Shown here in pieces: positions 14,156-61,761 of a DNA stretch of 64,000 bases. A program made the translations under genes and the position numbers. The notes beneath the pieces were generated by a model, which made no database searches, was not told where the DNA came from, and was given only the letters and a program-made list of their open reading frames with translations. How positions within the stretch are numbered: the first letter of the stretch is position 1; every line of letters begins with the position of its first letter. Origin of the DNA: Octopus sinensis (lineage: Eukaryota); NCBI RefSeq assembly GCF_006345805.1, contig NC_042999.1:12586001-12650000 (forward strand), in the 5' to 3' direction.

Positions 14156-14498
14156 ATGGCTGTAGAGGAAAGGGCTAAATACATTTTTGGAGTTGCTGAT
14201 AGTAGCAAAGAAAGTGCAGATATTTGTGTGGTCGGCGATCAGAGAACGGAGACAACGACCGATGACAACAATCGCAGCAGCATTTACAACAAACACGGCA
14301 GGCATTTTACGAAGAATGCCAGGCGATTCCCTCATCTGCTGATGTCTTGCATTCTCATTTTTTCCATCCTATGTATACTGTCCACACAAGTACATGCCAT
14401 CAGTTCCCGTCATCGCCAACACCGAAAACATCGGCACCAAACTTATTCCCCAAAGTACAAAGATCGACGCCCTGCTACGCCTGTGGTTGGGGTTGATG
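14156..14498 (+). CDS. Exon 1 of multi-exon secreted/type II membrane protein gene (N-terminus, hydrophobic segment, His/Arg-rich stretch)
   Basis: ATG with A at -3 and G at +4. Hydrophobic LLMSCILIFSILCILSTQVHA. Phase-1 donor G|GTAAGA at 14498/14499 matches the phase of the next exon. Confidence 0.75.
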
Positions 14499-17400
14499 GT
14501 AAGATAGATTTTATGGAACCTTTTTTTCTCACCCCTTTCACCTTTTAAGTATCTTATTCCACAAAAACATACATTATTTTTCTGGCTCACTCCTGTTTCC
14601 AATCCCAAAATTATTTTCAGAAATATGCGTATTTCTTGAAAGGAAATTAAATATGAATTCATTCATTTAGTTTCAAGACAGGGTTTTTCATGATCAAAAT
14701 ACAAACAATATTACAATGGTAAACACTTAAACATTTAAGTTTAGATTTTAAACTGAAAATATATTTGTTAAAACTTATTTTTTTAAATTTTAAAATATAA
14801 ATAAAAGCTTTGAAATGAACCAATTTTCTTTTTTAAAATAAAGATGTTTCACAAAAATGTGTTGATATTAAAATAAAATTTTAAAACATTACATTTAAAG
14901 TACAAGTAATTTAACCGCATCAAACAACAAAGTAAAATAAAATTTAAAGTAACCTCAATTTTTTAAAACATAACAAATCGAGATAAAATAATATTGTTTA
15001 TTAAAGAGATGAGGCGCAGACATACGTGGTGAATCGAGCTGCTTGAAATAGTTACCAAAGCTCCCTTATGATACCTTCAGCTATCTTAAAAAATCAGAGT
15101 TGTCATAGGCTAATATATTCTTTGGTACACCATGCTTAGAAAAAAAAAAAAAGTACTCCACGGTGCTGACGGTTCGAATGCATTTGATTGTAGGTCTGCT
15201 TCATCAGGGCTGACCTGGGGCTATAGAGTATCAACTTCCTGATTTCGTTCAACCTTTCCTTAATCTTTGGAGTTTCGGAATAGCCAACATTAATTCATAG
15301 GGAAGGAAAAGGGCTAGGAATTAGGAGGTATTTCTTTTTCTTACAACGGAAATTACGATTATGAAAATATTTTCCGCCTTCAAAAATGTTCAATTCAAAA
15401 AACTTTTTGATCCTTAATACTTGCCCTTGTCATACCCCATGTAATAGTAATACTATTCCGAAATTCCGTCGTTATTTTGACCATTAGGGGCGGTTAGTTT
15501 GTTTCAAGGTTTGGGTTGTATCGTTGGAAGCTGACCAAATGTGCACTTGGATAATACGGAACATTTACAATATATTTTGGTTGGTCATTCAACCCCCACT
15601 TTTTTTTTTAATATTGACATTTATAAAGTTACTAACTTAATGAGACAATTAGCTAACAGCTGCAATGAAACTACAGGAAAACAACAATACTTATCTGCAA
15701 ATAACGAGATAAACCTTTAACTGTTTCGTTGATTGCTGTTTTTTATTCTCTCTCTCTCTCTTTTTTTTTTGTAAACTAGAGATCGTGTGTTCGATCCTCA
15801 GTGAAGGCCCTCTATAAAGACATCGGAAATTACAGCATTATCTTTGTAAATATTTGTTACAATGTTGGCAAAGACGTTATGAAGAATTAGGCTTAGCGGG
15901 CTGTGTCAGCATTTATTTTTAGGAGACGAATTTTCGCGTTTAGTTTTCATGTAAATAAACATTGATTGATGCCGATATACCACCATAATAATTGCGATTA
16001 ATTATTTTAGGAATTTTTGTAATTGTTTCTCACATTGAATAACACGCCATTGACATTGTCTACAAACACTCTGTCGTTGACAAATATCAGCACATGCTTC
16101 TTTGATATATTTTGCTTCTTAAAACTTAATCTAACGTCCGTCATCCATGCTGGTATGGATAGGACGGTTCGGTAAGATCTTACGTATCAGAAGTCTGCAT
16201 TGGGTTCCACTGTCTGTTTCTTTTTTCCACTGTCTGTTTCTAAGTATAAATTTGTTGCAAGTACCATTTTGCATTTTACTATCTAAAATAATGTCCCATT
16301 CTCTTGCAAGAGTTGCTATTAAACGTAGCAAATTCAAACCATTCTCTCCACGCATGCCAGACCTAAAAACACCCAAATTGCCCTTCTTTGTAGCTGTTCA
16401 TACAGTGCAAAGCATTGATTACAAAAAGCTTTGCTCTTTTTTAATAATAAGATTGATACTCTACCAGTCATAGATGTCCCTCACTGTAGTATTATTTCTA
16501 CATTTATAATTATGTACTCATCATATTCACCTGTATATGTAGTGGATAATGTCTAAGGGGTAAAATGTTTGGCCTGATTATGTTTCCAACTGAAAGTCTT
16601 TCAACCACGAGTTCAATTCAGTTCACATCTTCTAATGTCTTCTGTTGTGGCTCCAAACTGCATTCACCTATCCTCTACCCAGTCCCCTTCTAATCTTTGA
16701 ATTCCCATTCTAAACTCAGCCAAATCCATCTAATGCATAGCTTATCATTCTTAAAACTCACGTTCTGCTCATGGAAGCAACTATTAACTCTACCAAAATC
16801 CAAACTTTCCTCAGTACACAATTCTATGTAGGGTCTTGGTCAGCTCCCTTCCTCTGCAAACTAACCTCATCTTATCTCAGAACTCTGGGCTAAGAGGGGC
16901 TTTTTGTCACCTCTCTTTCTCTGCAAAACTATGCATTTAAACTTAATCTCATGCAGTCACTTATCTGCAGTTTCTGTTCAATTATTATAAAATAATTATT
17001 GATTCATCAATCACCAGTTCCTCTTAATTGTGACATACATTTTTCTTTTTCCCAAAGAAAATTTAAATGAAATGAATCCAATCAGGAATTGAAATTGGAC
17101 CACGGAACTATATTCAAATTTGATTATACCATCAATGTACTATACTCATTTCCCTCAAACAATTAAAGAGACTCAATTTTGCCTCCAGAATACAGAAAGC
17201 TGGAAAGTTATGTCTATCTTTATAGCTTCAATATAAATAATATTGTCACACTATTTGGCTTATCATTCTGCAGCCCTGATCTGAGATCATCATTTGAGTG
17301 CTGCTATTAATCCACATGACCAAGACCATTCCTGAATCTATGATACAAGCTTCTTGCTTTAAAGTTATCCATGTTAAAACTTTCCATCAAAATTTCATGT

Positions 17401-21944: not shown

Positions 21945-23396
21945 CACAAATCCTTCAGGTAGATGGCCCTGCTCGATTTGTAGTAGAGTGTAGGTAGAAA
22001 CTCTATAAGATGTACCAAGTGTAAGCTAGGACACATAAGAGGTGTAGCAATATCAAAGGAAGGCTAACTGGAAGATAGTTTTCATACGTGGCAGATGCTG
22101 GGAAGCAATAAACATTGAAAATGTGCAGAGACCAACTTCTGCCACTTTCCAGGGAGTAAAACTAGAAGTAGTTAATATCTTCTGTTACCTAGGTGACCAA
22201 GTCAGTAGCGGGGGAGGGTGCGCTGAAAGTGTAGCTGCTAGAATAAGAATAGCTTGGGCAAAGTTCAGAGATCTCTTACCTCTGCTGGTGACAAAGGGCC
22301 TCTTGCTCAGAGTAAAAGGTAGACTGTATGATGCATGTGTACGAACAGCCATGCTACATGGCAATGAAACATGAGCTGTGACTGCTGAGGACATGCGTAA
22401 GCTCGCAAGGAATGAAGCCAGTATGCTCCGCTGGTTGTGTAATGTCAGTGTGCATACTCGACAGAGTGTAAGTACCTTGAGAGAAAAGTTGGACCTAAGA
22501 AGCATCAGATGTGGTGTGCAAGAGAGACGACTGCGCTGGTATGGTCATGTGGCGAGAATTGATGAGGACAGCTGTGTGAAAAAGTGCCACACCCTAGCGG
22601 TTGAGGGAACCTGTGGAAGAGGTAGATCCAGGAAGACCGGGGAGAGGAGGTGGTGAAGCACGACCTTCAAACTTTAGGTCTCACCTGAGGAATGACTAGT
22701 GACCAAGACTTTTGGAAATATGCCGTGGTGCGAAAGAAGACCGGCAAGCAAATGAGACCATAATCTCGTGGCCTATGCCAGGGGCATAACCAGCCCACTT
22801 ATGCATACCTTTCCTTCTTTGGACACTAAAACTCTGCTTGCGAAAACCTGTTGAGGCAAGTGAAATCAAAATCAAATCTAGTGGGGTACAAAGAGCACCA
22901 TACGAGTGTGATCACTGACAGAGCGGCTAACCAGCATCCATGCCAGTGGCACTTAAAAGGCACCATTCGAGCGTGATCATTACCAGCGTCGCCTAACTAA
23001 CACTCGAGCCCCGTGCTAGTAGGGTATTAAGAGCACCATCCGAGCATGATCATTGCCAGAGCAGCTATCTGGCCTCTGTGTCAGTGGCACGTAAAAGACA
23101 CCATTCGAGCGTGATCGTTACCAATATCGCCTTACTGGTACCTGTGGCGGTGGAATGTGTAAAAGATTCGAGCAAGGTCATTGCCAATACCGCCTGACTG
23201 GCCCCGTGCCAGTGGTATGTAAAAGCACCCACTACACTCTCGGAGTGGTTGGCGTTAGGAAGGACATCCAGCTGTAGATACTCTGCTAGATCAAAATTGA
23301 AGCCTGGTGCAGCCATCTGTTTCGCCAGCCCTCAGTCAGTCATCCAACCCATGCAAGCATGGAAAGCGGATGTTATACTGTGATGATGATGATGAT
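21945..23396 (+). mobile_element. RTE-clade LINE, 5'-truncated, with arrayed 3' UTR and (GAT)n tail
   Basis: FCYLGDQV, RIRIAWAKFRDLLPLL, KGRLYDACVRTAMLHG, RLRWYGHVAR, GRGR; ~5 tandem ~60-bp units; conserved tail ...GGAAAGCGGA..T(GAT)n. Confidence 0.88.
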
Positions 23397-23509: not shown

Positions 23510-24800
23510 CGAGGAGCGTTCAATAAGTAATGCCCCTGACCCACTTCCCATAGCAGTAGAGCAACGAAACTTGGCACAGTTATTGGTCTTTTTCTACATA
23601 GGAACGACCCAGAGTTACGCATTTCTCCCATCGTTTGATACAGCTCTGGAGACCGTTTTTGTAGAAGACCCCAGCTTGGTCCTACAACCACGACGTGACT
23701 TCAGAAATCAAGGCTACATCATCCGGGAAACGCTTTCCTTTCAAAAACATCTTCATGGCTGGGAAGAGGTGAAAATCAGAGGGTGCAAGGTCAGGAGAGT
23801 AGGGGGATGGGGAGGAGTTCATAGCCGCACACCTGTGCTTCTGATCTGGCGAGACGCGATTTGTGGACCAGAGCATTGTCCTGCAGGAAGAGGATGCCTT
23901 TGCTGATCTTGCCCTGCCTCTTGATTTTGATAGCTTCTCTTAATTTCCTCAAAAGTGAAGCATAATAGGCTCCTGTAATTGTGGTACCCTTTGCCAGGAA
24001 ATCTGTCATCACTACTCTGTCCTGGTCCCAGAAGACTGTGAGCATGACCTTGCCAGCGGAGAGCTGCACCCTTGCCTTCTTTGGAGGAGGTGAGTCATGG
24101 TGCTTTCACTGCATTGACTGGGCTTTGGTCTATGGATCATAGTGATGGACCTAGGTTTCATCCTGTGTAATCAGTTTTTTGAAAAATTTTGACTCTTTTC
24201 CTTGGCACATCTCCAAATTCATCCTAAAGCACTCGATGCGTTCTTGCTTCTGGAAAGGTGTGAGCAACCAGGGAATCCATCTGGCAGACACCTTTTGCAT
24301 ATGCAAATGGTCATGAATGATAGTTTCCACAGACCCGGTACTAATCTTGACCTCATGGGCTATTTGGCGAATAGTTATGCGTCGATCTTCCAAAATGGCA
24401 GCCTCAACTTGACGGACAGATGCCTCATCAATGACAGAAGGGGGTTGACCAGATCTGGGAGCTGTTTTCACAGAGTTCCGACTATGTTTGAATTCACAAT
24501 GCCAGCGTTTTACAAGGTCATATGATGGGACATCATCACCATAAGTTACTTTCATTTCATCAAAAGTCTCCTGTGGTGTGCGTCCTTTCAAATACAAAAA
24601 CTGGATCACTACTCGACACTCACCAGGCTCCATTTCACACTTGACTCAGTTCAAACACCTGTAAATCAGAAACCACAATTAGTTCAGAGCTGTAAGTTGC
24701 CACTTAATCTATAGAGATATAAATAATTGCACATGCAAAATTTCAGCTAGATCAAACAACTGCAAGTGGGTCAGAGGCATTACTTATTGAACGTCCCTTG
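23510..24800 (-). mobile_element. mariner transposon, full length 1291 bp, inactivated (irritans/Himar-like)
   Basis: TA flanks at both ends. TIRs CGAGGAGCGTTCAATAAGTAATGCCCCTGACCCACTT vs CAAGGGACGTTCAATAAGTAATGCCTCTGACCCACTT. Transposase 24633 to ~23570 with HTH, SARWIPWLLT, ITQDET, KVMLTVFWD, QDNA and YSPDLAPSD (spacing consistent with DD34D once a small indel is repaired). Contains stops and frameshifts. Confidence 0.93.
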
Positions 24801-26915: not shown

Positions 26916-27460
26916 GAATTGATATTATTAAAGAAATTGGGAGGCAGTCTACTAACCAGACTGTGAAAAGAGTGTCTTTGAGGGCAGTGCAGTTATCTGA
27001 AGGTTTCCATGGCAGAATAAGTCGAAAATCAATGAAAAGTCTTCTGAGGAAATCTAGCAGAACATTTTCCTTGTTGTTGTATGGTGACATTTCAGCAAGT
27101 GATGGCACTCAAGCCACTTTAATAAGTGTACATTCTGAAGGAAGAGAATTGCCATTGTTGCAGGTCTTGTTAGACACTTCAAACCAGTCTTTGATTGTTC
27201 GGTACCAAGGTGAAAGATCTTACCAACGTATTAATATTCATGGATTCATTCCTATGACATCTGAAGACATTTCTGAAATACAATCGCATCCAAAGAGTCC
27301 CTGGGACCAGTTGCTGTTTACTTTCGGTCTTAATGAATTACGCATTGTGATTGACTGCTTCCCAGAGAAAATTATTCCTCTCCGTCAGAAAATGGCTATT
27401 TTTGATGGCCATAAATTATTTTTCTTTGGCCATGATAAAAAGAAGAAAAATTATTTAGAG
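26916..27460 (+). CDS. Exon 2: TSPN / laminin-G-like domain
   Basis: Acceptor TTTCCTTTCAG, donor GAG|GTTTGT, 545 nt open (phase 1 to 0). (G)IDIIKEIG...FSLLLYG...TLISVH...LQVLLD...WDQLLFTFGLNELRIVIDC...FFFGHD fits the TSPN pattern. Confidence 0.85.
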
Positions 27461-30277
27461 GTTTGTGCTTGTTTTATTAGATTTTGTGTCTTTGGTTGAA
27501 CTTTGACTTTTGAACTTTAACCCGTTTGATAGGGATCTGCTTGGGACTATACCTGGTTCTAAGAGAATACACATTTCGTTCAATTACAACCGGCACCAAA
27601 ATTTCATGTTATGTTACTTTACCAAATGACAGTTACTTTACTAAATTCTTCATTATTTTCGAAATCAATTGAAGCAAAGACTGCATAAAACCAGTCATAC
27701 GCCAGGTGACTGACTGACAGAAAACTAAAGCTCTTAAGTTGCCTGAAGGAATTATTAATCATACACATTATTATCAATTAGGAGGAATTGTACCCTGTTT
27801 ATAAACTATTTAATTCTGAGTGGAAAGCCAAAGAAAAGAGAGCCCTTACATTTCTTTCTTTTTGATGTTTTTAACAAGTAACATTTGTGTTTAAGGCTCT
27901 CAATGAAGAAAAAAGAATTTTATTAAAATTTTTTTTTTTTCCCATTTTGTCTCCATTGCAACTGAATGCATCTCGTTTGTAATAAATGACATTGTATTTA
28001 CGAACCCAAGATAGCAGTTTACTAGAATATACCTTTATTCTTTTACTTGTTTTAGCCATTGTTTGTGGCCATACAGGACCACTGCCTTGCAGGGTTTGTT
28101 GACAAATTGACCCCAGCACCTATTTTAAATCTGAAATGCCAAATCGCTAAAAGAGGAAAAAAAAAATAACAGAACCTGGCACTTCGTTAGTGAGGGTTCC
28201 TGCTGATCTGATCAGTGGAACAGCTTGCTTGTGGAATTAATGTGCAAGTGGCTGAGTACTCCACAGATATGCATGCCCTTTATGTGGTTCTCAGGGAGAT
28301 TCAGCATGACACAATGTAACAAGAATGGCCCTTGTACTGCTCATTTCTGCCAGCTGCAACAATATGAAATAAATCGCCAAGTTACAGGGACATAAACAAA
28401 CTAACACTGGTTGTTAAGCAGTGAGGAGATAAACACAGACAATCACACACAAACACAACAGGCTTCTACACAGTTTCCATCTACTAAATTCCCTTACAAG
28501 GGATCGATTAGCCCAGGTCTATAGTAGAAGACATTTGTCCGAGTTGCTGCATAGTGAGACTGAATGTGAAGCCATGTGGTTGGGAAACCTCTTAACCACA
28601 CAGCCATGTTTATGCCTAAAAGAACATGGCCTTTTCATTTATTCATTCTTATATGCTTTTCGTTGATGTAGGAGATTTTGAAGCAGTGAGCTGCAAAATC
28701 ATTGGAGCATTGGACAAAATTCCTTGTAGTACTTGTTCCGTCTCTTTGCATTGTGAGTTCAAATTTTGCTGAGATGAACTTTGTCTTTCATCCTTTCAGG
28801 GGTTGATAAAATAAAGTACCAGTCAAGTACTTGGGTCGATGTAATCTACTAACTCCCTTCCCTAAAATTACTTTCTTTGTACTGAGACCAGAAACATTTA
28901 TTATCAGAATCTATAAATATCTGCAATTAGTAACTCTATGAAATAGACACACACCATTTCACAAACTTTTAGACCAAAGTGAAAGTAATTGGAACAACAC
29001 TGCAAATATTTCAAAGGGCAGTATAAATATATATGGAACTCTTTCAAATTAGTTGCATATCTGGCCTGATTTAACATTTATTTAATAAGACAAAATGACC
29101 TTCTTAGAAAGAATCCTTTTTTGAAATACTGTACAACAATCTTACAAATGTTAATGCTAAATGCTAATTCTTCATCGTAATCATTATCACCATTTAGCAT
29201 CCACATTTCTGCTTGTTTGAGTCAGAAGGAATTTACTTCTAAAACCAATTATAAATTTACCACTAAAGCCTTCTCCTCCCCCCTCTCTCTTTCACATACA
29301 CACACAAGTTGTTTTTTTTCAATTTCTGTCTACTAAATCCAATTACAAGGCTTTAGTTATCCTGGGGCAGAAAACATTTTACCAAGGTCCAATACCACTG
29401 GTACCAAATCTGAAATCCTATGAGAAAACGAGTTGGTCTTTCTTATGAATATGTTTTTGTTACTCCGAGAAAGGACAGAAGCTACTGTTGTCTGGATAAT
29501 AAAATGGTTTGGGAAGTGATTTCTGGAAAGAAGCTTTAGAGAGCGGTCTTAGCAATTGTTTACACTAAGAAATTACTACCAAACTACATCAACCCCTACA
29601 CATATGCACCCAGATATATACAAATATTCATGCAAATATACTTGTGCCTCCTCCTCCTCCTCCTTCCTGACCCAGTTCCATTTCCTTCCCCTCTCTGCCC
29701 AAACTCATATTTACCATTGACCCACCCTTGTTTGCCATTCACTTTTATTCCATCCCCCTCTCCACCCATCTGCTGCTCTCGTTTCACACTCTTGTGAACT
29801 TTGCTTCTTACACACACTTCCCAATCTCCTTTCCCTCTTTCCTCACCTTCTTTTACCTTAAGCATATTTCCCAACACCTGATCACTACCCCCTCTTTTTC
29901 TCTTTCCGCCTGGGGTAGCCATGTATCTCCTCTATAACAATACTCCTGTTTTTGACCCTCACTCATACCTTAGCCACTCAATAACTGACATTCAGCCACC
30001 CCTCTCAATACTACATGCCTACTTGATTGAGGGGTCTTGTCTTGAGAGTTATTTGGTAACTTCACTACTGCCCATACTCTAAAAAAAGCTCTCAGTATAG
30101 TCTGTAAAGTGGTGGATATTAGAAAGGGTATCTAGACATAGAAACGATTTCAGGACAGACAGACAGATCACTGTGGTTCTCTGGCTCATCAAATCCTGTC
30201 AAACCGTTCAACTCCTGCTAAGATGGATGCTAAGTGATGATCACACACACACACGGAAGTTAAATGATGATGATACT

Positions 30278-30336
<59 letters not shown>

Positions 30337-30584
30337 TCTCATCTGTATCACCAACATTTGGATTTTAGGTCAGATATTTATAAAAAAAACTTGTCTAGAA
30401 ATCTCTGCTTAGATCAGTTGATTAAAAAGAATTGAATTTCTAATTGTAATTATTTTTTGAAAATTTCTAGTCAATAATTAGATAATATTGTTATGGTTTT
30501 AGTGATTTATTTATTACTTTTTAATAAAAATGTTTGTACTTTACATGTTACTGTTGAAGTTATGTATGTCTGTTTATTCCTCAG

Positions 30585-30651
30585 GGTTTGGTTTATAAGG
30601 CAAAACTTTACAATCATATTATTAAAGGATTTCCTTGGACTTGTCCCAAAG
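30585..30651 (+). CDS. Exon 3: end of TSPN domain (GLVYKAKLYNHIIKGFPWTCPK)
   Basis: Acceptor TTTATTCCTCAG, donor AAG|GTAAGG, 67 nt. Phase 0 to 1 exactly bridges exons 2 and 4. Confidence 0.85.
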
Positions 30652-30752
30652 GTAAGGATATTATTTAAAATATTTTATGGCTTAGAGTGTGAAGAATTGT
30701 CTGATTGACGATTTGCAATTGGTTGCATCTAGTAACATGTACATTTGGTTAA

Positions 30753-30962
30753 CCCTTTTGATATCAATCTGCCTAGAACTGTTCCTGATTCTTGTGATAC
30801 AAACTCCCTGTTTTAAAGAGATGTAAGTTAAAAACCTTTCAGCTAAATTTCATGTTAATTTATGTTCCAGACACTTGGTTAATAAGAACAAATTTATTTC
30901 ATTAACTTTCATTAACTTTAAAATTAATTGAAACAAAGACAGAATATTTCAACAGAAAAGAG
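30753..30962. mobile_element. TTAA-flanked MITE (piggyBac-like ends)
   Basis: TTAA|CCCTTTTGATA ... AAAAGAG|TTAA; internal similarity to the copies at 39348 and 50936. Confidence 0.65.
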
Positions 30963-31599
30963 TTAACTCAGAGAAATCATCATTTAGTGTACGTTTTCCC
31001 TGCTGGCATGGATTAGACGATTTGACTGGAATTGGTAAGCTAGGTAGCTGTATCAGGCTCTAGTCTGATTTTAGTATGGTTTCTACAGCTGGATGCCCTT
31101 CCTAATGCCAACCACTCCAAGAGGTGTAGTGGGTGCCTTTTACATGTCACTGTGCTTTGGCGATCCATCTGAACATCGATCGCTGACACTTTCGGCCGAT
31201 CTGTCCTGGTCAGTTATCCCTACACTGTCATGGCTGCTTGTTATGTGTCATCACCACTGACCATGACTATAGTCTCTCTTGGCCTGATGTGTCTTCTCAA
31301 GCACAGAAAACTGTCAAAGGTCTTGATCATTCATTATCACTTCTGTGAGACCAAACGTTTGAAGATCATGCTTCACCACCTTGTCCCATGTCTACCTGGG
31401 TCTACCTCTACCACAGTTAGGGACTGGCATGTCTTTATGCAGCTGTCCACATCCATATGCCAGCTGTCCTCATCCAGGCATCAAATGAGAATAAAATGGT
31501 AGGGTTAAATAATTTGATTGGATAATAAAAACAGTGAAAATATGCCATAAGATGGGAGTTAGAAGTGAAATAAATATTTTAAAGCTCCATATTCAGGCA

Positions 31600-31900
31600 C
31601 ATGTGTAGGTGTGTGGCAAGAAGCTTACTTCCGAACTACATGGTTCCGGGTTCAGTCCTGCTGCATGGCACCTTAGAAGAGGTGTTTTCTACTATAGCTT
31701 TGGACCAACCAAAGCCTTGCAAGTGGGTTCAGTAGATGGAAACTGAAAGAAGCTTGTTGTATAGATCTATGTCTGTGCACGTATGTCTTTATGTCTGCGT
31801 TTCTACTCCACCACTGCTTGACAGCTGGTGTTGATGTGTTTAGTGGTGCAGCAAAAGAAACTGACAAAAGAAGGACCAGGATTTTAAAAAAAAATAGACC
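31600..31900 (+). mobile_element. tRNA-derived CORE-like SINE; related pieces at ~18055-18200 (-), ~28430-28615 (-), ~55850-56000 (-), ~61815-61930 (+)
   Basis: GTGTGG..AAGAAGCTT...CCGGGTTCAGTCC head, GGCACCTT...TCTACTATAGC core and GATGGAAACTGAAAGAAGC motif recurring across copies. Confidence 0.75.
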
Positions 31901-33365
31901 CTACTGGAGTTGATTCATATGACCAAAATGAATTGTAGTTGTGACCGATGCTGGTGGCACATAGAAAGCATCCTTTGAGCACTAGGACTCATGGAGGCAA
32001 AGTGGTTGGTGTTGTCAAATGTGAAAAGCTCCTTTTGAGTGTTGGGCCTCATGGAGGCAATGATGCATAACTGAATCCTTTGGCATTATCTCATGCTTGA
32101 GAAAACCCGTCAAGCCAAGTAAAATCACAATTGTGGCAGATATTGGTGTTACGCAAATGGCACATAAAAGCACCCATTACACTTTTGAAGCGGTTGGTGT
32201 TAGGAAGGGCAGCCAGCTGTAAGAAACCTTGCCAAATCAGACTGGAGTCTGGTGTAGCCTTCCAGCTTGCCAGCCCTGGTCAAACCATCCAAGCCGTGCC
32301 AGCATGGACAACAGATGTTCAATGATGATGATGATTCTATATATGTTGCACTCTTTAGAAGTCATGTTACAAATTTCTTTATCTGATTTTCGCAATAATA
32401 AGAAGAAGCTTCTTTATTGCAAGCCAGCACATTGTAAGTTAATATAATTCTTTTGGTAGTAATTAATAGAAAGCAATTACAGAATATTTAATACTACAGA
32501 CTTTATCTCTTTTTTTATATTATCATTTGATTTATTAGACCTTGTTCCTGTTGTAGAATTATTATCTATTGTTATATTTTTTTGAATGTTGTCCATTATC
32601 TGATGGCTGAGTCTGGGAGAATACTTTTTCCACTGTGGCTGATATCAGGAAATATTCTTACAATTATTATAATTTAGCTTTCATCAAATTTCTTAGTAAT
32701 TATACAAAATGATGAAATGGATACTAACCGCTGAAAGGAAAATATCACCTTAAAACAAAAAAAAAAAGCAAATTTCTTGTTTGTGTAAATCCTTTCATAA
32801 CTATTCTGTCATTTACTCCCTCTCCTCTTCCCCTGTCTTTATGATTCATTCCCTCTCACTCTTGTGAGTGTGGGTGTGGGGCATTCCTTTACTCATTGCC
32901 TGCCACCAAGCTTAGTATATTGTGCTCTTTCTGCACTTCTCATGTTAATCCTCTCTGTAATATCTTATTCTCCACCCACCCCTATATGATGTACAGCATG
33001 ACTGGAGAAATCGACCAACCAACATTTATATTGGTTACTGTTATACAGAGATTATTGGATTTCATTATTCTTTCAGTTTTCTGCAGGAAATCAAACTAAA
33101 TCCTCATTATGACACTGCTCTTGCATGCATGGATTCTATGTGATGGTTTTTATGGTTATATATATTAATGTTTATATCAGAGAATATCTGAAAAAATATG
33201 TTCTGTGTAGTTTTCCTAGAAATGAGAGACCAACTTAAAATGACTTGTTGCAAATTTTGAAGGAAGCCATTTGTCAAAAAGTATATGTATATTTATATGT
33301 GTGTATATATATATATATTTATGTATATATATATATATATATATATGTGTGTATATATATATATT

Positions 33366-33424
<59 letters not shown>

Positions 33425-33435
33425 TTATGTATATA

Positions 33436-34297: not shown

Positions 34298-34324
34298 ATA
34301 TGTGTATGTATGTGTGTGTGTGTA

Positions 34325-34369
<45 letters not shown>

Positions 34370-34404
34370 ATATATATATATATATGTATGTATATATATA
34401 TCTA

Positions 34405-34924: not shown

Positions 34925-34938
34925 TCTATATCTATCTA

Positions 34939-34980
<42 letters not shown>

Positions 34981-39549: not shown

Positions 39550-39742
39550 TTAAATATTAAAAAACAAAAACAGCTTCCAATTCTTTTGGAATTCAAAGCC
39601 TTTTTTAATGTACTTAACATTTTTAATTAATTTGCATACCATTTGGTTCCTGTAGAACTTTGACTTCATTTTGTCACTGTGTGTGTGTGTGTGTGAACAC
39701 CTTTATTTTATTTTCACCCTGCTTGATTCTGATTATCTTTAG

Positions 39743-39861
39743 CCAATTCTCTTCAAGCCGATGACAGTGGTTTCAGTTCTCTGACTTTGACTGAACGTGT
39801 GGCAACTCTGCAGAGGCAAGTGGAACAGCTGGTTGTTGTGGTTAATTCTATTCAGCTCCAG
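39743..39861 (+). CDS. Exon 4: coiled coil (LTERVATLQRQVEQLVVVVNSIQLQ)
   Basis: Acceptor GATTATCTTTAG, donor CAG|GTAAAT, 119 nt, phase 1 to 0; heptad hydrophobic pattern. Confidence 0.8.
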
Positions 39862-43094: not shown

Positions 43095-44152
43095 ATGTGT
43101 GTATATATATATATGTATATATATGGTTGCAGCTTGTTAAGAAGGTTCTGAAAACAATTACAGTACGGACATTTGATAAGAAACATAGAAGCAACTTCGA
43201 TGAGATTTTCTTTCCTTTTATATCGACCTCCATATTCAACTGGTCCTTATTTAATCGACCCTAAAAGCATAAAAGTCAAAGTTTACATTGGTGGAATTCG
43301 AACGCGGAATGTGAAGCTCCTGGGCAGAGCTCTAAACATTAGTAACAATGTATTAGCTGGATGTGTGTGTGTGTGTGTAATGGTTGGGTGTGTCACTTAT
43401 TTTGTAATTGGTGAAAAGTGTTTCTCACCTGCTGACTTTAAACCTGACTTTACAAAAAATTGTTTTGCCCAACTGATGGCTATTATTATTTTAAGCCATT
43501 AAACGACTATCATCATCATCGTCATCATCGTCATCATTATCATTATCAATCAAAAATGTGCTTATACACGTGACTGCTCATTGACAACTGTCTGCATCCA
43601 CAGGCCATTTGGTGCTTACAATAACCAGTGCAAATAACTGTGTGCTTAAGCGTTGTGGGGATTTTTTGTGTTGAAATACCATATTTAGTGCTTGCAAACA
43701 GCAATGAGGTCAATTTGATTGATTTTTTAAAGATTCATTCAAATTCACATTTTCGATGGGAGGCCTTGAAAAGGCAAAAGACACATTGGCAGAAAAACAG
43801 AAAAATGTTTCTGTTTTGTGTTCCTTGCAGGCGAGCGAGACAGAAGAACAACGTGTGCTTCAGCATGTTCTCAATGCTGCTTCTACTTCAACTGCCAGGG
43901 CACCCAGAACTCTGACATGCTTGCAATGCTGCCTCTAATTCAATTGCCAGAGCATCACAGGCAGCTCAACAGGCAGAACTCCGCTGCGCTTGCAATGTTG
44001 CTTCGACTGCAGTTGCCAGAGCATCAGAGACAGAAGCGCAATTACACTATTTTCAACTCCAGTCCTATCATTATCTTGCACCATTCAAAGGACGGGGGTG
44101 GGGGATATTTGCTAGTATACATATATATATCTATGTGTGTATATATATATAT

Positions 44153-44191
<39 letters not shown>

Positions 44192-44198
44192 GTGTGTA

Positions 44199-44239
<41 letters not shown>

Positions 44240-44312
44240 GTATATATATATATGTATATGTGTATATGTATATATATGTATATATATATATATGTGTATA
44301 TGTATGTATATG

Positions 44313-44381
<69 letters not shown>

Positions 44382-45423
44382 ATGTGTGTATATATATATG
44401 TATATATATGGTTGCAGCTTGTTAAGAAGGTTCTGAAAACAATTACAGTACGGACATTTGATAAGAAACATAGAAGCAACTTCGATGAGATTTTCTTTCC
44501 TTTTATATCGACCTCCATATTCAACTGGTCCTTATTTAATCGACCCTAAAAGCATAAAAGTCAAAGTTGACATTGGTGGAATTCGAACGCGGAATGTGAA
44601 GCTCCTGGGCAGAGCTCTAAACATTAGTAACAAGGTATTAGCTGGATGTGTGTGTGTGTGTGTGTAATGGTTGGGTGTGTCACTTATTTTGTAATTGGTG
44701 AAAAGTGTTTCTCACCTGCTGACTTTAAACCTGACTTTACAAAAAATTGTTTTGCCCAACTGATGGATATTATTATTTTAAGCCATTAAACGACTATCAT
44801 CATCGTCATCATCGTCATCATTATCATTATCAATCAAAAATGTGCTTATACATGTGACTGCTCATTGACAACTGTCTGCATCCACGGGCCATTTGGTGCT
44901 TACAATAACCAGTGCAAATAACTGTGTGCTTAAGCATTGTGGGGATTTTTTGTGTTGAAATACCATATTTAGTGCTTGCAAACAGCAATGAGGTCAATTT
45001 GATTGATTTTTTAAAGATTCATTCAAATTCACATTTTCGATGGGAGGCCTTGAAAAGGCAAAAGACACATTGGCAGAAAAACAGAAAAATGTTTCTGTTT
45101 TGTGTTCCTTGCAGGCGAGCGAGACAGAAGAACAACGTGTGCTTCAGCATGTTCTCAATGCTGCTTCTACTTCAACTGCCAGGGCACCCAGAACTCTGAC
45201 ATGCTTGCAATGCTGCCTCTAATTCAATTGCCAGAGCATCACAGGCAGCTCAACAGGCAGAACTCCGCTGCGCTTGCAATGTTGCTTCGACTGCAGTTGC
45301 CAGAGCATCAGAGACAGAAGCGCAATTACACTATTTTCAACTCCAGTCCTATCATTATCTTGCACCATTCAAAGGACGGGGGTGGGGGATATTTGCTAGT
45401 ATACATATATATATCTATGTGTG

Positions 45424-45474
<51 letters not shown>

Positions 45475-45481
45475 GTGTGTA

Positions 45482-45522
<41 letters not shown>

Positions 45523-45691
45523 GTATATATATATATGTATATGTGTATATGTATATATATGTATATATATATATGTGTATATGTATGTATATGTATATAT
45601 ATATGTATATGTGTATATGTATGTATATGTATATATATATATATGTATATGTGTATATGTATGTATATGTATATATATGTATATATATATA

Positions 45692-45747
<56 letters not shown>
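43010..45747. repeat. Tandem duplication, unit ~1284 bp, bounded by (TA)/(TG) microsatellites
   Basis: Identical ORFs offset by 1284 (43628/44912, 43818/45102). At least 6 substitutions and a 3-bp indel between copies outside the microsatellites. Confidence 0.93.
43770..44115 (+). mobile_element. Helitron-like remnant (RASET.EQ-type repeats, ending CTAG|T); duplicated at ~45055-45399
   Basis: Degenerate repeats ASETEEQR...AASTSTARA / [12 protein letters not shown]...[11 protein letters not shown] resemble low-complexity repeats of animal RepHel N-termini. CTAG at 44112-44115 followed by T. Confidence 0.5.
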
Positions 45748-45748
<1 letters not shown>

Positions 45749-47269
45749 TAGCTTAAGGTGACCCACTCTACGCGCGGGTAAGAGTGAGGTTGTTATTTTC
45801 TGTTGCATCCTTTTGGCACGTAAAAAGCACCATCCAAATGTGGCCGATGGCAGCGCCGCCTTGACTGGCTTCTGTGCCGGTGGCACGTAAAAAGCACCAA
45901 CCGATCGTGGCCGCTGCCAGTGCCCCTCCCCCAGTGGCATGAAAAAAGCACCCACTACAATCACGGAGTGGTTGGCGTTAGGAAGGGCATCCAGCTGTAG
46001 AAACACTGCCAGATCAGACTGGAGCCTGGTGCAGTCTCCGGGCTTCCCAGACCCTGGTCAAACCGTCCAACCCGTGCTAGCATGGAAAACGGACATTAAA
46101 CAATGATGATGATGATTCTCCCTCTTTGTTTCTCCTTTCTCTCTCCCTTTCCCACTCTCTTACTCTTCCTTTCTCTCGGACTCTCCCTTGCTTTCTCTTA
46201 CTCTCTATCTTTCTCTATCTATCTCTCTCCCATTTATAAACAACAAAAGATCTTGAGTAAGTTGAGAAAGAAAGTAGTTTTAAAGATCAATCATAAATAT
46301 CAGGCAGTGACAACGGAAAGGTCTGCTTCAAGGCAGAAAGCTAAACATTAACATTTAAAAGGGACAGACGAACTTGCGAGCTGAATAAAAATAAAAAAAA
46401 TATTGGAAACCAAAGTTTGAAAGGATAGAATCTGAGGATAGTAGAGTCACCATGGCTGGCATTTCTTAATGACGGACAGTAACATAGTGGCAGTTTAACG
46501 GCTGGCGTAAAATTTAGAACTTGATGTAAAAGAAAATTCTTAAACACCAAGCTTTGAAGTGATTCTTTCTCACGACAGTAGACTCACCATGGCAAGCATT
46601 CAAAACTTCTTCATCATGAACGGCAACACATTGATGATTTAAAGCCTGGCGCAAATTTTTTAGCTTGATGTGACAGAGAATTCCTAAACACCCGCTCCTG
46701 TAAATTTTAATCCCCTTCAAGCCTTTTCACATTTTGGTTAATATAACCCGATTTCATTCGGGTCTACTTGGGTCACATTTTATAAGATGAGGAATTTTGT
46801 CCTAGAGGTCACGCCTTTCATTTGAGGAAATAAATAGTTGCCATGCAAACTCGCCAGCACTTTTAACATAGGTGTGCATATTTTCAAGCACAACCGACCA
46901 CATAATGCACACATTATATATATATATATATACACATTATATATATATGTGTGTGTGTGTGTGTACGCATTATATATACAAATCATCATCATCATCATCA
47001 TCGTTTAACGTCCGTTCTCCATGCTAGCATGGGTTGGACGGTTCGACCGGGGATCTGGGAAGCCAGAAGGCTGCACCAGGCTCCAGTCTTATCTGGCAAT
47101 GTTTCTACAGCTTGATGCCCTTCCTAACAGCAACCACTCTGTGAGTGTAGTGGGTGCTTTTTACGTGCCACCTGCACAGGTGCCAGGCGAGGCTGGCAAC
47201 GGCCATGGTCGGATTGATGTATTTTATGTGCCACCAGCACGGAAGCCAGTCGAGGTGGTGCTGGCATCA

Positions 47270-47764: not shown

Positions 47765-47896
47765 AACACTAAAATGGCACAGCATATTGCACAACTGGAA
47801 ACCTGTGAATGCCTCCCAAAATGTACGTACAATGGCAAAACGTTTGGTGACAAAGAAACATGGCAACCAGACACCTGTACTCTATGTCACTGTCAG
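47765..47896 (+). CDS. Exon 5: end of coiled coil + first part of vWC (LETCEC...CTYNGKTFGDKETWQPDTCTLCHCQ)
   Basis: Acceptor TTTTCCTTTAG, donor CAG|GTATGT, 132 nt, phase 0-0; vWC signature C-x2-NG-x-x-F-x4-W-x2-D-x-C-x2-C-x-C. Confidence 0.9.
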
Positions 47897-48156: not shown

Positions 48157-48205
48157 GAAGGAAAACCTGATTGCAAAGTGAGGGCTGATATTCCTGGTTG
48201 TTCAG
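48157..48205 (+). CDS. Exon 6: vWC continuation (EGKPDCKVRADIPGCS)
   Basis: Acceptor TTTTATTAG, donor CAG|GTATGG, 49 nt, phase 0 to 1. Supplies the G-x3-C that follows CxC in vWC. Confidence 0.8.
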
Positions 48206-50051: not shown

Positions 50052-50273
50052 AGCCATGTAGCAGTTCACCTTGTAAACATGCTGGATCATGTGTTGGAAA
50101 CGAATCAAATGGCACGTTCAAATGTCTATGTCCAGCACCCTTCAGTGGTACTCTCTGTGAAACCTGGATCAATCCTTACGTCTGGCCTGCTGACCCTGGA
50201 TACTGCCATGAAACCTATGAAGCATATTACTTTGATCGTAATAAAAACCAATGCCTTGTATTTAATTACACAG
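50052..50273 (+). CDS. Exon 7: EGF-like domain + N-terminal part of Kunitz domain
   Basis: Acceptor TTTCATTTGTAG, donor CAG|GTATGA, 222 nt, phase 1-1. PCSSSPCKHAGSC...FKCLCPAPFSGTLCE (6-Cys EGF) then PADPGYC...YYFDRNKNQCLVFNYT. Confidence 0.92.
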
Positions 50274-51800: not shown

Positions 51801-53866
51801 TTGGCAGTACAGGATGACAGCACAAGTAGAATTCAAAATATGAATATATATATTATTTTTAATCAGCAGAAGTTACAAAGTGACTCAAAAGCTGAGCGTT
51901 TCATGCATGGCCACTTATCAAATTTTGAATTTTGTACACACACACACACACACAGATATTTATACGCATTCATTTTTGAGATATTTCTGAACAGGAAATG
52001 AGTCATGTTTTGAGAATACTTGCTACAGCACCTCAAAATATTAGATTTTATGCTCTTCTGAAAGTCACATATGTAGTAATATAATATGATAATACCACTA
52101 TTTGTATAAGTATGTGGTGTCTGTTTTTGTTCATCATTTAGTCTTAGACTTGGCATTAACAGATGGCTCTGCTGATGTTAAGAAGAGCAGAAAGCTTGCA
52201 GGTTATACTCTAAACATAAGGTGTTTTTCGCTTTTCTGATGGTTGTGTAGCAAGCATTACAGATGTGGAAAATACTTATCAGTTGGTGATAGGGGGTGAC
52301 TTGCTCCCTGGTGTGTGGGCAGTGTTCTTTAACTGCGTTGGGTTTTCCTTTAGTTGAGTGATGGATGCAATGAAGAATGTCTAGAAAAATGGTTTTGGTC
52401 ACCCACTTAGCTCTTTCAGATGAGTTGGAGCCAAATCATATTTTATATGAAGAGTAGTCACATACTAAGAGGGGTTTAGATGAAGCATTAAGATGATGTG
52501 TGGTATGATGATTATTCAGAATCGTTGACAAAAGGCTATGTTTGAAGATGAGGAAGAGGTTAACAGAACTTACGGGGTCAATGTGTTGGTCATGGGTAAA
52601 TGTAGACTGTCCTTTTTCCTTCATTCTATTCACCTCTCACCCATTCCTCTTCCCTTGTACTACTTTACACTCTAGCGATCTCTTGATTCTTCTATTTCCA
52701 CTTCCACTCACTGCCTACATTAAGGACCCATAAAGTTACTTCACTCCTGCTATTTTTATCTCTTCCCCACTCCACCCTGATCACTGCCACCCTCCTCTCT
52801 TCTAAAATCCGAGTAGTCATGTAGCTCCTCAACTACAACAAGAAACCTCCTCTGTTCTTCTGCCTTCTCTAATACTTTAATCCCTTATCTCCCAGCTTTA
52901 AGCTGTTCCTCTCTGGATTTGTTATCATGCAGGCTGCATGGCAATCCCTTTGGTGTCACAAAACAAGTACCCAATACATTGTGTAAAGTGGTGAGTGTTA
53001 AGTATGGCATTCAAGCACAGAAACCATGCCAAAGTAGACATTGCAGAATGATGGAGTCCTTAGACCCGTTGCATCCTGTCAAATGGTCCAACCCATGCCA
53101 GAATGGATCATTGATGGTATAGGATGATGCTTTTCATAATAACTACTGTAGACTGTTGAGAGTGATAAATAATTTGGCTCTACCAAACAGCATTGAAGTA
53201 TGAGGAATGGGAATGCCAGAAAGAGGTGTGTGCATTGAAGGGACCAAGGAAGATCAGTTCAGAGAATGGCAAGGCAGAATAGCTTCGTCAGATCTGATGA
53301 TTATCAGCTAAATTCCAAATTCTCCCTGCTGCCAATAGAGTAGACAACCCTAATGGAATGAGAAAGAGAAACTTTAAGTCAGAGGAACTGAAGGGTTTTG
53401 TTCCTAAACACCAGTAGTTTATGGCCAGGATTCATGGTTGCCAAAAGAGTAGTCTTTGAGAGAGAGAAAGTAGTCTTTTAGTGTGTGTGTAAAGAGACTT
53501 AAGATAGGAGGAATAAAGAGGGAGAGGGTTCAGTCCCATTGTGTGACACCTTTGACAAGTGTCTTTTATTAGAGCTTCATGCTCACCAGTCCCTTGTGAT
53601 TGGATTTGGAAGATGGAAACTGAAAGAAGCTATCGTGTGTGTGTGTGTGTGTGTGCGTATAGCTACTAAAGCTTTCTCTTTTTATTCTCTCTCTGTTTAT
53701 TTTCTCGTGTTCCTTTCTGTTGAAGATTGTAGGCTTGAAACATAAAAGACTTTCTCACCTTCCCAAGCATTAAACTAATACACCTGTTTGTTATTTATAC
53801 ACCTGTCTTCGTCTTTTGTTTTTTTTTGTAAATTCCATCCATATATATATATATATGTATAGTGAA

Positions 53867-58005: not shown

Positions 58006-60846
58006 ATCATCATCATCATTCCATGCTAGCATGGGTTGGACGGTTCAACTGGGGTCTGGGAAGCCAGAAAGCTGCACCAGGCCCAGTCTGATCTGGCAAT
58101 GTTTCTACGGCTGGATGCCCTTCCTAACGCCAACCACTCCGTGAGTGTAGTGGGTGCTTTTTATGTGCCAGACGGGGCTGGCAAACGGCCACAGTCGGAT
58201 GGTGCTTTTTACGTGCCACCGGCACTGGTATCCCAGCTACAATTTCCATTGATGTTGATCGATTTCGATTTTGATTCTGATTCTCACTTGCCTCAACGGG
58301 TCTTCACAAGTAGAGTTTTGTGTCCCAAGAAGGAAAGGTATGCATAAGTGGACTGGCTACATCCCATGTAGATGCCATGGGTTATGGTTTCACTTGTCCT
58401 GCCGGGTCTTCTCACGCACAGCATACTTCCATAGGTCTCGGTCTCTAGTCATTTCCTCGGTGAGACCTAAAGTTCGGAGGTCGTGCTTCACCACCTCATC
58501 CCAGGTTTTCCTGGGTCTACCTCTTCCACAGGTTCCCTCAACTGCTAGGGTGTGACACATTTTCACACAACTATCTTCATCCATTCTCTCCACATGATAA
58601 TACCAGCACAGCCGTCTCTCTTGCACACCACAACTGATGCTTCTTAAGTTCAACTTTTCTCTCAAGGTACTTACACTCTGTCGAGTATGAACACTGACAT
58701 TACACATCCATCGGAGCATACTGGCTTCATTTCTTGCGAGCTTACGCATATGCTCAGCAGTCACAGCCCATGTTTCACTACCATGTAGCATGGCTGTTCG
58801 TATACAGTCTGCCTTTTGTCACTAGCAGGGGTAAGAGCTCTCTGAACTTTGCCCAGGCTATTCTTACTCTAGCAGTTACACTTTCAGCACACCCACTCCT
58901 GCTACCCTAGATAACTATTTCTAGTTTTTCAGTGTTTATTGCTCCTGAACATCTGCCACATACAAAAACTATTTTCCTAGTTAGCCTTCCTTTGACATTG
59001 CTGCACCTCTTATATGTCCATAGCTTACACTTGGTGCATCTTATAGGGTTTCTACCTACGCCTTTTCTACAGATCGAGCAGGGCCATCTACCTGAAGGCG
59101 TTTGTGACTTGTCTACCTTCCTACTTATTAGGACTTTGGTTTTAGCTAGGTTGACTCTAAGGCCCTTCGATTCCACACCTGAAACTTCTCCTCCAGTTCT
59201 GATAGTGACTCAGCAATTAGAGCAAGGTCATCAGCATAGAGGAGCTCCCAGGAGCATCCTGTCTTGAATTCCTCCGTTATTTCCTAGAGGACTATGATAA
59301 ATAGGAGGGGGCTGAGAACTGAACCTTGGTGGACCCCAACCTCTACCCGGAATTCTTCACTGTACGCATTGCCAACGCTCACCTTACTAGCTGCGTCCCT
59401 GTACATGGCTCGCACAGCTCTCACTAACCATTCATCTATCCCTAGTTTCCTCATTGACCACCAGATAAGGGATCGGGGGACCCTGTTGAAGGCTTTCTCC
59501 ATGTCAACGAAAGCCAGGTACAGGGGCTTATCCTGCAGCTGTCTTACCAGGAATATAGCATCAGTGGTACTTTTCCCTGGCACGAACCCAAACTGCATCT
59601 CATCTAAACTGACTCTTTCTCTAATTAGTTGGGATGTGACCTTTATTACCTGATCCAACAGCTTGATACCCCTGTAGTTATTTGTATCTAGGGCGTCACC
59701 TTTACCTTTGTAGCAGTTGACTATTATGCTGCTACACCAGTCATTGGGAATGACTCCTTCGTGTATCACCTGGTTAACTATATGGGTGACTAGGCTATAG
59801 CCAACACTACCAGATATTTTGAGCATCTCAGCAGTAATTCCTGATGGGCCTGGGGCTTTCCCTGTCTTCATGCTTCTAATTGCCTTAACTATCAAGGAAC
59901 TGTCAACTTGGATAGCTGGTCCCTCTATTGGGTCGACATTTGGCAGACTCTCTTTATCACATTAATTTTCTTTATTCAGCAACCTTTCATAGTGGCATCT
60001 CCAAACCTCTCTCTTTGCAGCCTCATTTAGCACAAGTGAACCATCATCCATGCAGACACATTTCTCTCCTACCACATCATGATTCTCTCTCACACACCGT
60101 CTTGCAACACGAAATACCTCAAGTCTTTCATCCTCACGGCGCAGAACAGTGGCAAATTTTTTCTTATCTGCTTCCCCTCTGGCTAAATACACCTGCCTCC
60201 TAGCTTCCCTTCTGGCAGTCGGATACACTTCCCTGCTACCACCGTTCTTCCAGTCCTTCCAAGCCTGTTTCTTTTCTCTAACAGCCCTGTCAACAACATT
60301 GTTCCACCACCACATTATTTTGGATCTTGAGGGGACTTTGCACCAACAGCAGATCTGGTCAGTGGCTCTCAGCAGGTTGTCCCTTAGAGACCTCCAGTTG
60401 TCTTCCACCCCATTTGAAGCTATATCCTCTTGTATTTCGTCAAAGGCTTCAAGTAATATGTCTCTAAATCTCTGTCCATTCGCAGGATCTTTAAGCTTCC
60501 AGATCCTTCTTCTCTATGTTGGTCGTCCTCTTAGTCCTGATCCTAAAGTCACTAACTACCTATCTATGTTGTGGGGTACATTCTTCACCTGGGAAGGTTT
60601 TGGCATTTATAAGCAGCCAGCTTTCCTTTTTCCTGGCAAGGATGTAGTCAATTTGGCTAGTATGTCGACCCGATCGGTAGGTGACTAGGTGGCTGGTAGG
60701 TTTCCTGAAGTTTGTGTTGCAAACCATAAGACTATTTGTATCGCAGAACTTCAGCAGCCTGGTTCCCTCCTCGTTGCGGGAACCATAACCGTAGCCTCCA
60801 TGTGCGCCATAGAAGCCCCCACCATGTCGTCCAACATGCCCATTGT
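58006..60846 (-). mobile_element. RTE-clade LINE, longest copy in the window (partial APE, RT, Cys-rich finger, 3' UTR), degenerate
   Basis: APE tail (GYGYGSRNEEG, SQIDYILAR), KAPGPSGITAEMLK, YRGIKLLDQV, MQFGFVPGKSTTDAIF, FVDMEKAF, GVHQGSVLSPLLF, YADD; deletions and frameshifts. Confidence 0.92.
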
Positions 60847-61618
60847 TATATTATATATATTTAAAGATAATGGTGTTGTTTTCACATAAAAATGTTTTAT
60901 TGAGAAAAAAAAAGTGCTTTTTATTTATAATAAGCGTTTTCATAAAACAGCATTTACTAAAAGTAGGAGAATCCTTATCTTTAATTTGAAGTGCAACATA
61001 TCTGATTTGGCAGGTTTTTCACAAAATAAATTTTGCAAAAAGGAAAAAAGAAAATGAAAATTATATTTTCTGACCGGTTTGTGCTGGTTTTCAGTTTATC
61101 AATGTAAAGTTCACTTCCAACAGAATTTTTAGTTTGTGGAAAACACACATGGTTAATTTTGCACATGTGTGCACAAACATATACACACTTTCACTATCAT
61201 CATCATCATCATGATTAGTTTGATGTTCACTTCCCTATGTTTCCATGGGTCATGTGGAATTTACTGAGGCAGATATTCTACAAGTGGATACTCTTCCTGT
61301 TGCCAACCCTCACCTTTTTCCAAGCAAGGTTCTATTTCCCCTTGGCCAGACATATTTTGCAGAAGACTGGAAAGGAACGACATTGCTTCTGTGATGGTGT
61401 TATTTGCTTACATCTGTTACATGATGCCCAGACAAGGGCACACCTACACATGCATGCACACACACACACATGCACAATGGGCTTCTTTCAGTTTCCATCT
61501 ATCAAAGCTCTGTTCATTTTCAGTCTTCTGTGAAATGCATCTGGCCATGGGAAAAATATTATCTTGCATGGATTGTGAATATATGATTTTTAACCGTTTT
61601 TTTAAAATTGCTTTCCAG

Positions 61619-61761
61619 GTTGTGGTGGCAATGTAAACAATTTCAAATCATTGGAAGAATGTCAGAAGAATACCCTGTTTGGTGCTTGCTGTATTTACCA
61701 ATATTCTATAAAAAGAGAAGACATAATAAAGGGAAGGCAATCTGTCCAGAAAAGCTGTCAG
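61619..61761 (+). CDS. Exon 8: C-terminal part of Kunitz domain + GACC Cys-containing segment; gene probably continues beyond the window
   Basis: Acceptor TTGCTTTCCAG, phase 1. (G)CGGNVNNFKSLEECQKNTLFGACC completes the Kunitz. The donor CAG|GTCTGT is weak, so the 3' boundary is less certain; read-through stops at 61768-61770. Confidence 0.85.

Follow-up and report, generated by a model that had tools for sequence, protein, structure and literature searches.

The 64,000-nucleotide stretch of Octopus sinensis DNA considered here, hereafter the window (assembly GCF_006345805.1, contig NC_042999.1, positions 12,586,001 to 12,650,000 of the forward strand, with positions counted below from its first base), carries a chain of eight + strand exons distributed over 14156-61761. 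Very probably, they form the true 5' end of an octopus gene of roughly 3,800 codons that encodes a giant secreted protein; its Argonauta hians orthologue is deposited under the name 'kielin/chordin-like protein' (GAB1599713.1). The exons and the parts of the protein that they encode are as follows.

Exon 1, 14156-14498, + strand: residues 1-114; start codon and hydrophobic segment, with the phase-1 donor ATG/gtaaga.
Exon 2, 26916-27460, + strand: residues 115-296; main body of a TSPN / laminin-G-like domain.
Exon 3, 30585-30651, + strand: residues 297-318, GLVYKAKLYNHIIKGFPWTCPK; final TSPN strand and the cysteine just 5' of the coiled coil.
Exon 4, 39743-39861, + strand: residues 319-358; linker and first half of the coiled coil.
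Exon 5, 47765-47896, + strand: residues 359-402; end of the coiled coil, LETCEC, and start of vWC subdomain 1.
Exon 6, 48157-48205, + strand: residues 403-418, EGKPDCKVRADIPGCS; end of vWC subdomain 1.
Exon 7, 50052-50273, + strand: residues 419-492; EGF domain at 50057-50158 and first half of the Kunitz domain from 50183.
Exon 8, 61619-61761, + strand: residues 493-540; second half of the Kunitz domain to 61668, GACC at 61681-61692, and start of a linker.

When the chain was rebuilt from stop-free stretches and splice-site logic, the same eight exons that had been proposed in a first-pass annotation of this DNA were obtained, in agreement to the base. Joined, they amount to 1620 nucleotides, or 540 codons without a single stop; the outgoing phases run 1,0,1,0,0,1,1, an AG with a pyrimidine tract precedes each of exons 2-8, and GT follows all eight. 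The accompanying remark that most of the exons are invisible among the open reading frames (ORFs) is equally borne out, as the list of ATG-initiated ORFs shows exons 1 and 2 only. In the intron 27461-39742, exon 3 is the clearest candidate that is entered in phase 0, left in phase 1, and bordered by good splice sites, and the phase-0 3' border of exon 2 is common to homologous fragments from other genomes.

The identity of the gene emerges from its orthologues. An exhaustive HMMER search with the translation of exon 2 retrieved a protein of 3,774 aa (P0006; E 4.5e-82, 81% identity over P0006 residues 24-200), which a cluster look-up identified as GAB1599713.1 from Argonauta hians, a product of automated annotation. 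In a tblastn comparison against the window, this protein is strictly collinear with the exons over its residues 22-446, and the alignments end within a few residues of the exon borders, with E-values of 1e-83, 1e-8, 3e-14, 5e-18, 3e-33 and 1e-16 for exons 2, 3, 4, 5, 7 and 8, respectively. Per-exon identity to the Argonauta protein is 70-86% for exons 2-8, the short exons included (19/22 residues in exon 3, 32/39 in exon 4 and 13/16 in exon 6). With a protein from another genus collinear with the exons at matching borders, the chain is, by this comparison, far beyond chance. A partial model from Octopus bimaculoides, A0A0L8IC82 (P0001), covers exons 4-8 and lacks exons 1-3, with an identity placed at 90-100% per exon, or at 94-100% (38/39 in exon 4, 16/16 in exon 6).

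The O. bimaculoides model begins within a short interspersed nuclear element (SINE)-like repeat and contains two extra segments that were considered as exons of the present gene and rejected. One, corresponding to 40441-40608, is a SINE-like repeat that has no GT donor here and is absent from Argonauta; the other, corresponding to 52182-52315, is frameshifted here, would split the Kunitz domain, and is also absent from Argonauta. Because the coiled-coil heptads and the Kunitz domain are continuous without them, these segments are probably annotation errors.

The order TSPN, coiled coil, CxC, vWC-half, EGF, Kunitz, GACC is common to the octopod orthologues and extends beyond cephalopods. A model from the gastropod Batillaria (P0039) reads from the end of the TSPN domain through the coiled coil, LETCEC, vWC-half, EGF, Kunitz and GACC to a tyrosinase domain, and a RefSeq model from the bivalve Ruditapes (P0021) reads from the vWC-half through to a tyrosinase domain and repeats; all head cysteines are kept in both. 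The head shares its order and exon borders with the giant mollusc 'kielin/chordin-like' tyrosinase-like proteins of the GAB1599713.1 type. The taxonomic distribution obtained from the word-index protein search is a lower bound, since the orthologue of 3,774 aa was not among the proteins that it returned. As judged from these alignments, the family is an uncharacterised mollusc-wide variant of the Kielin/NELL type that cephalopods, gastropods and bivalves share. The domain combination, which the earlier annotation did not recognise as a named gene, does carry a name: the Argonauta protein stands in the databases as 'kielin/chordin-like protein', and O. bimaculoides is represented by a partial model. 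The deposited names are automated, and the protein is uncharacterised experimentally.

The 3' limit of the chain is a splice site and not the end of a gene. Position 61761 is a phase-0 donor, CAG/gtctgt; without splicing there, the frame closes two codons further on, at the stop 61768-61770. Both the O. bimaculoides and the Argonauta proteins run on directly past '...KSCQ' with 'VLS[VI]SACRKFHR...', followed by a vWC-like unit, and the O. bimaculoides model reads 83 aa beyond exon 8. The continuation 'VLS[VI]SACRKFHR...' is not encoded in 61762-64000, the 2.2 kb that remain to the window end; as the orthologue models continue and their continuation is absent from this interval, the gene leaves the window. 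By the orthologue's length, the 540 codons are the N-terminal ~14% of the protein, and ~3,300 more codons are expected 3' of the window. The first-pass description of a hidden, self-contained eight-exon gene with an unfamiliar architecture is thus partly an artefact of the window edge.

Within the window, the encoded head is related to that of NELL proteins. Pfam was silent on the N-terminal part of the translation, the TSPN region, but a profile built from exons 2-3 and five to seven homologous fragments matched the NELL2 N-terminal domain over its full length (E 2e-5), followed by NEL and collagen IX NC4. An AlphaFold2 model of exon 2 was unusable when computed from the single sequence (predicted local distance difference test, pLDDT, 43) and of moderate quality from an alignment of eight rows (pLDDT 65, predicted template modelling score 0.66); a fold search with the latter returned the thrombospondin-1 N-domain (E ~1e-4, template modelling score 0.5-0.6), chicken NEL and collagen IX NC4. 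A single phmmer alignment, running from the second half of the TSPN domain over exon 3, the coiled coil and CxC into the start of the vWC domain, links the chain to chicken NEL (E 5e-5) and also to NELL2, which are its best PDB sequence matches. Within it, exon 3 aligns to the NEL segment 'GIMQDVQLL..GFISQCP' and exon 5 to 'LDQCYCERTCTMKGMTYREFESWTDGCKNCTC'. The coiled coil has L V L V L V I N M I L at its a/d positions, 10 of the 11 being aliphatic, spans ~5.5 heptads in a register unbroken over the exon 4/5 junction, and is flanked by cysteines, with WTCPK upstream and LETCEC downstream. The proposed likeness of the TSPN, coiled-coil, LETCEC/CxC and vWC head to the NELL and kielin oligomerisation module is accordingly upheld by sequence matches that are collinear and by a fold search that agrees with them.

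The remaining domains also correspond to what had been read from the DNA. The vWC domain consists of subdomain 1 only (C..C.C..C..C), with the EGF domain directly after it and no CCxxC, and scores 23.6 bits in Pfam, below the VWC threshold of 27.6; the same truncation to the first subdomain is found in the gastropod and the bivalve. The single EGF domain of the window (25.2 bits, threshold 21.5) and the Kunitz domain (PF00014, 52.9 bits, threshold 21; best solved relatives boophilin and TFPI) both exceed their thresholds. The Kunitz match spans profile positions 5-50 of 53 and retains four of the six canonical cysteines. At the positions that we take, from BPTI numbering, to be those of the cysteines and of P1, canonical Cys1 is Tyr in two octopods and Cys in the gastropod and bivalve, Cys6 has no cysteine, and P1 is His rather than Lys or Arg; with cysteines missing and His at P1, trypsin-type inhibition is not expected. 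The GACC motif that follows is invariant in all five aligned sequences, among them the second module of the orthologue.

Exon 1 encodes a hydrophobic segment, LLMSCILIFSILCILSTQVHA, at 14336-14398 (residues 61-81), which ends at VHA/ISS, an AxA-like site, and an internal methionine, Met63, lies at 14342. The segment may be a type II anchor or a signal peptide, the latter either with a long N-region or, should translation begin at Met63, of the classical form. Pfam gave no match to exon 1. Its first ~22 residues are ~50% identical to the N-terminus of the Argonauta protein, whose model passes from residue 22 straight to exon 2 and is without a signal sequence. At the point where that model leaves exon 1, no in-phase donor was found on reading the window. 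The donor at 14498 was retained on account of its strength, its phase and the hydrophobic segment that it preserves, and it is the least secure border of the chain. An AG with a weak pyrimidine tract stands 10 nucleotides 5' of the start ATG (window 14130-14155: TTTGGCAG/CCCTAAATTATG), so that an untranslated 5' exon may precede exon 1.

What the gene would encode beyond the window can be read on the Argonauta orthologue, whose layout was derived from Pfam scans of the protein, whole and in pieces. From the N-terminus to the C-terminus, the following order was obtained.

First section: TSPN (no Pfam match), coiled coil, vWC-half, EGF, Kunitz (profile positions 5-50 of 53).
Second section: linker, vWC-like unit, tyrosinase domain, G[YF][DN] repeats.
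Third section: EGF, complete Kunitz with 'LVGACC', further repeats.
Fourth section: vWC-like unit, second tyrosinase domain, repeats.
Fifth section: 22 vWC domains, vWD, TIL.

The G[YF][DN]xxG repeats that follow each tyrosinase-like domain have no Pfam match. The tyrosinase-like domains themselves (~560-760 and ~1400-1570) are closest to the functional units of mollusc hemocyanin and to bacterial tyrosinases. When the first is aligned to hemocyanin units, its CuB H1 is Ala and its CuB H3 is Gln; the second also appears, by eye only, to be without copper-ligand histidines, and no histidine was seen by eye at the first CuB position in the family members inspected. The domains may therefore be non-catalytic. 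The continuity from the head to the first tyrosinase-like domain is independently supported by the Batillaria model and, from the vWC-half onwards, by that of Ruditapes.

Compared with known systems, the protein combines features of several families. The best solved relatives of the head are NELL1, NELL2 and NEL (PDB 9oz6, 10ft, 9pwq), with which the TSPN domain, the cysteine-flanked coiled coil, CxC and the first vWC align, and trimerisation through the coiled coil is a function that NELL and the octopus head probably have in common. Nevertheless, NELL proteins possess five complete vWC and six EGF domains in ~810 aa and no Kunitz, tyrosinase-like or vWD domains, whereas one EGF and half a vWC are found in the window, and the downstream layout of the orthologue is unlike that of NELL. 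By these alignments, the protein is homologous to NELL in its head and is not a member of the NELL family. Kielin (Xenopus) and KCP are modulators of bone morphogenetic proteins (BMPs); according to what Matsui and colleagues are said to have described in 2000, Xenopus Kielin has a TSPN-like domain, a long vWC array and a vWD domain. The Argonauta orthologue resembles them in its N-terminal TSPN-like domain, 22 chordin-type vWC repeats (18 or more being taken as the mark of a Kielin-type array) and C-terminal vWD/TIL, but differs by an insert of ~1,500 residues that separates the head from the vWC array and consists of two modules of EGF, Kunitz, GACC, vWC-like, tyrosinase-like and G[YF][DN] repeat units. 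We know of no such EGF-Kunitz-tyrosinase-like modules in vertebrate Kielin or KCP. Homology to Kunitz/BPTI inhibitors such as boophilin, TFPI and conkunitzin-S1 is clear (boophilin E 7e-17 for the whole chain), although the octopus domain has neither the set of six cysteines and three disulfides nor a basic P1. Finally, neither the window nor the Pfam scan of the orthologue showed the TSR, the calcium-binding type 3 repeats or the C-terminal lectin-like domain of subgroup A thrombospondins, and the protein is thus not a thrombospondin.

Three other explanations of the chain have to be weighed against its being the 5' end of a giant Kielin-type gene. That it is a chance or decayed, pseudogene-like arrangement with no functional product is scarcely credible: the introns are indeed full of transposable elements and the homology of exon 1 is limited to its first ~22 residues, yet 540 codons are free of stops and frameshifts, per-exon identity to two other octopods is placed at 80-100%, and all cysteines are kept out to the gastropod and the bivalve. 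Another possibility is a complete, stand-alone secreted TSPN-coiled coil-half-vWC-EGF-Kunitz protein of 540-542 aa, which would end two codons past 61761, either as the sole product of the gene or as a short isoform arising by intron retention or early polyadenylation. It would make use of the in-frame stop at 61768-61770, and it agrees with the absence of the next exon from the last 2.2 kb of the window. We regard it as very unlikely, since in the models from O. bimaculoides and Argonauta the frame is spliced here and runs on, GACC leads to a vWC-like unit and then a tyrosinase domain in those from the gastropod and the bivalve, and the sequence just 3' of the stop matches a repeat ('RWKLKEACC') that other introns also contain.

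The third alternative accepts that the gene leaves the window and concerns its length. The gene might be of middle size, with the head and one or two tyrosinase-like modules (~1,000-1,900 aa), in which case the Argonauta model of 3,774 aa would be a chimera with a neighbouring Kielin-type vWC/vWD gene. The other models found are all short (459, 490 and 581 aa), the assembled Logan contigs are partial, and the Argonauta protein is the only one retrieved that crosses the junction from the tyrosinase region to the vWC array. Scarcity of long examples is nonetheless weak evidence, because the word-index search misses long proteins, the Argonauta one among them, and the layout reported for Xenopus Kielin, in which a long vWC array and a vWD come after a TSPN head, speaks for an undivided gene. 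In addition, it has been noted independently, in one passing remark, that tyrosinase sequences of more than 3,000 aa with kielin/chordin-like domains occur among spiralians (PMC11667028). A chimera is on balance unlikely.

A 5' end of a giant Kielin-type gene therefore remains the preferred reading, and several points weigh against it. The seven junctions were drawn from sequence and not from RNA evidence. Exon 1 is short in the Argonauta model and encodes no signal peptide there, so that an error lies either in that model or in the 3' border adopted here for this exon. The part of the protein downstream of exon 8 was read on an orthologue and not on this genome, and within it, the link from the tyrosinase region to the array of 22 vWC domains rests on one automated model and one sentence (PMC11667028). 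The apparent loss of copper-ligand histidines in both tyrosinase-like domains makes an enzymatic role doubtful. Lastly, the oligomeric state, the matrix role and BMP binding, which are taken up below, are carried over from NELL and Kielin.

If the protein behaves as its relatives do, the cysteine-flanked coiled coil would oligomerise the chains, most likely into a disulfide-stapled trimer as in NELL2. The NELL2 trimer was established by size-exclusion chromatography with multi-angle light scattering, deletion of its coiled coil gives a monomer, and inter-chain disulfides have been modelled at both ends of the coil (PMC13100127). By the same analogy, the TSPN head of the octopus protein may bind glycosaminoglycan or matrix, and the oligomer would display very long vWC-rich arms, three of them in a trimer. 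A body of 22 vWC domains and a vWD domain of the Kielin/KCP type suggests BMP or matrix binding, and the arms could thus act as an extracellular matrix scaffold or as a Kielin-type BMP-binding protein. The first-pass annotation had pictured an oligomeric scaffold presenting several Kunitz-like heads; this picture is incomplete in that each chain of any oligomer would carry ~3,300 extra residues and the Kunitz domain has His at P1 and lacks two canonical cysteines.

A more speculative extension, which we consider unlikely, is that the protein forms a trimerised Kielin-type matrix scaffold with its own cross-linking chemistry, hardening or building extracellular structures such as the calcified Argonauta eggcase and, in Octopus, egg envelopes, sucker linings or similar. 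Under such a scheme, the tyrosinase/hemocyanin-like domains would adjoin G[YF][DN] repeats rich in Tyr as well as Kunitz-like units that resist proteases, and the head encoded in the window would set the valency of the scaffold. The most abundant matrix proteins of the Argonauta eggcase are 'kielin/chordin-like' (10.1101/2021.07.10.451900); a link of the present gene to the eggcase proteins is hypothetical.

The DNA of the window is AT-rich (~35-40% GC) and dense in long interspersed nuclear element (LINE), SINE, mariner and microsatellite sequence. An exception in composition is a GC-rich (48-58%) LINE-like element on the - strand at 1-4700, ahead of the gene, and reverse-transcriptase fragments, a transposase remnant, a tandem duplication and SINE-like copies lie within the introns. 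The elements recorded are as follows.

1-4700, - strand: GC-rich LINE-like element.
1247-2983, - strand: ORF of this element with an Exo_endo_phos endonuclease domain (Pfam 1.3e-17).
3290-4675, - strand: upstream ORF of this element with a CCHC-like motif and long poly-Q and poly-T/P runs; no Pfam match.
22123-22656, + strand: reverse-transcriptase fragment.
24151-24633, - strand: N-terminus of a mariner/Mos1-type transposase in intron 1 (HTH_48, 1.8e-7).
35536-36333, - strand: reverse-transcriptase fragment with a weak PHD-like match.
43150-45760: tandem duplication of ~1.28 kb in intron 4, each copy with a long microsatellite; its ORFs at 43628-43915 and 44912-45199 encode 95 aa each and are one residue apart.
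58390-58791, - strand: reverse-transcriptase fragment.
59284-60408, - strand: reverse-transcriptase fragment (RVT_1 8.8e-16 for 59284-59895); related ORF tails share 'LRVKGRLYDACVRTAMLHGSETW'.
34716-34823, 42798-42902, 45953-46030, 47054-47152 and 58084-58152: examples of a SINE-like repeat with more than 15 copies on both strands.

The corrected picture of this locus is that of the presumed oligomerising head of what is very probably one of the largest secreted proteins of the octopus genome, and not of a small Kunitz-presenting protein. The family to which it belongs has Kunitz and tyrosinase-like modules between a NELL-type head and a Kielin-type body of vWC and vWD domains; its names are automated ones, and in the literature it has been touched on once in passing (PMC11667028). 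As existing gene models are fragmentary or include repeat-derived exons, the window offers a clean template for re-annotation of the 5' end, and it supplies a plausible signal sequence, which the Argonauta model does not have. Should the protein indeed serve as a matrix or BMP-binding scaffold, it would be relevant to mollusc biomineralisation and to the evolutionary recombination of Kielin and NELL modules.

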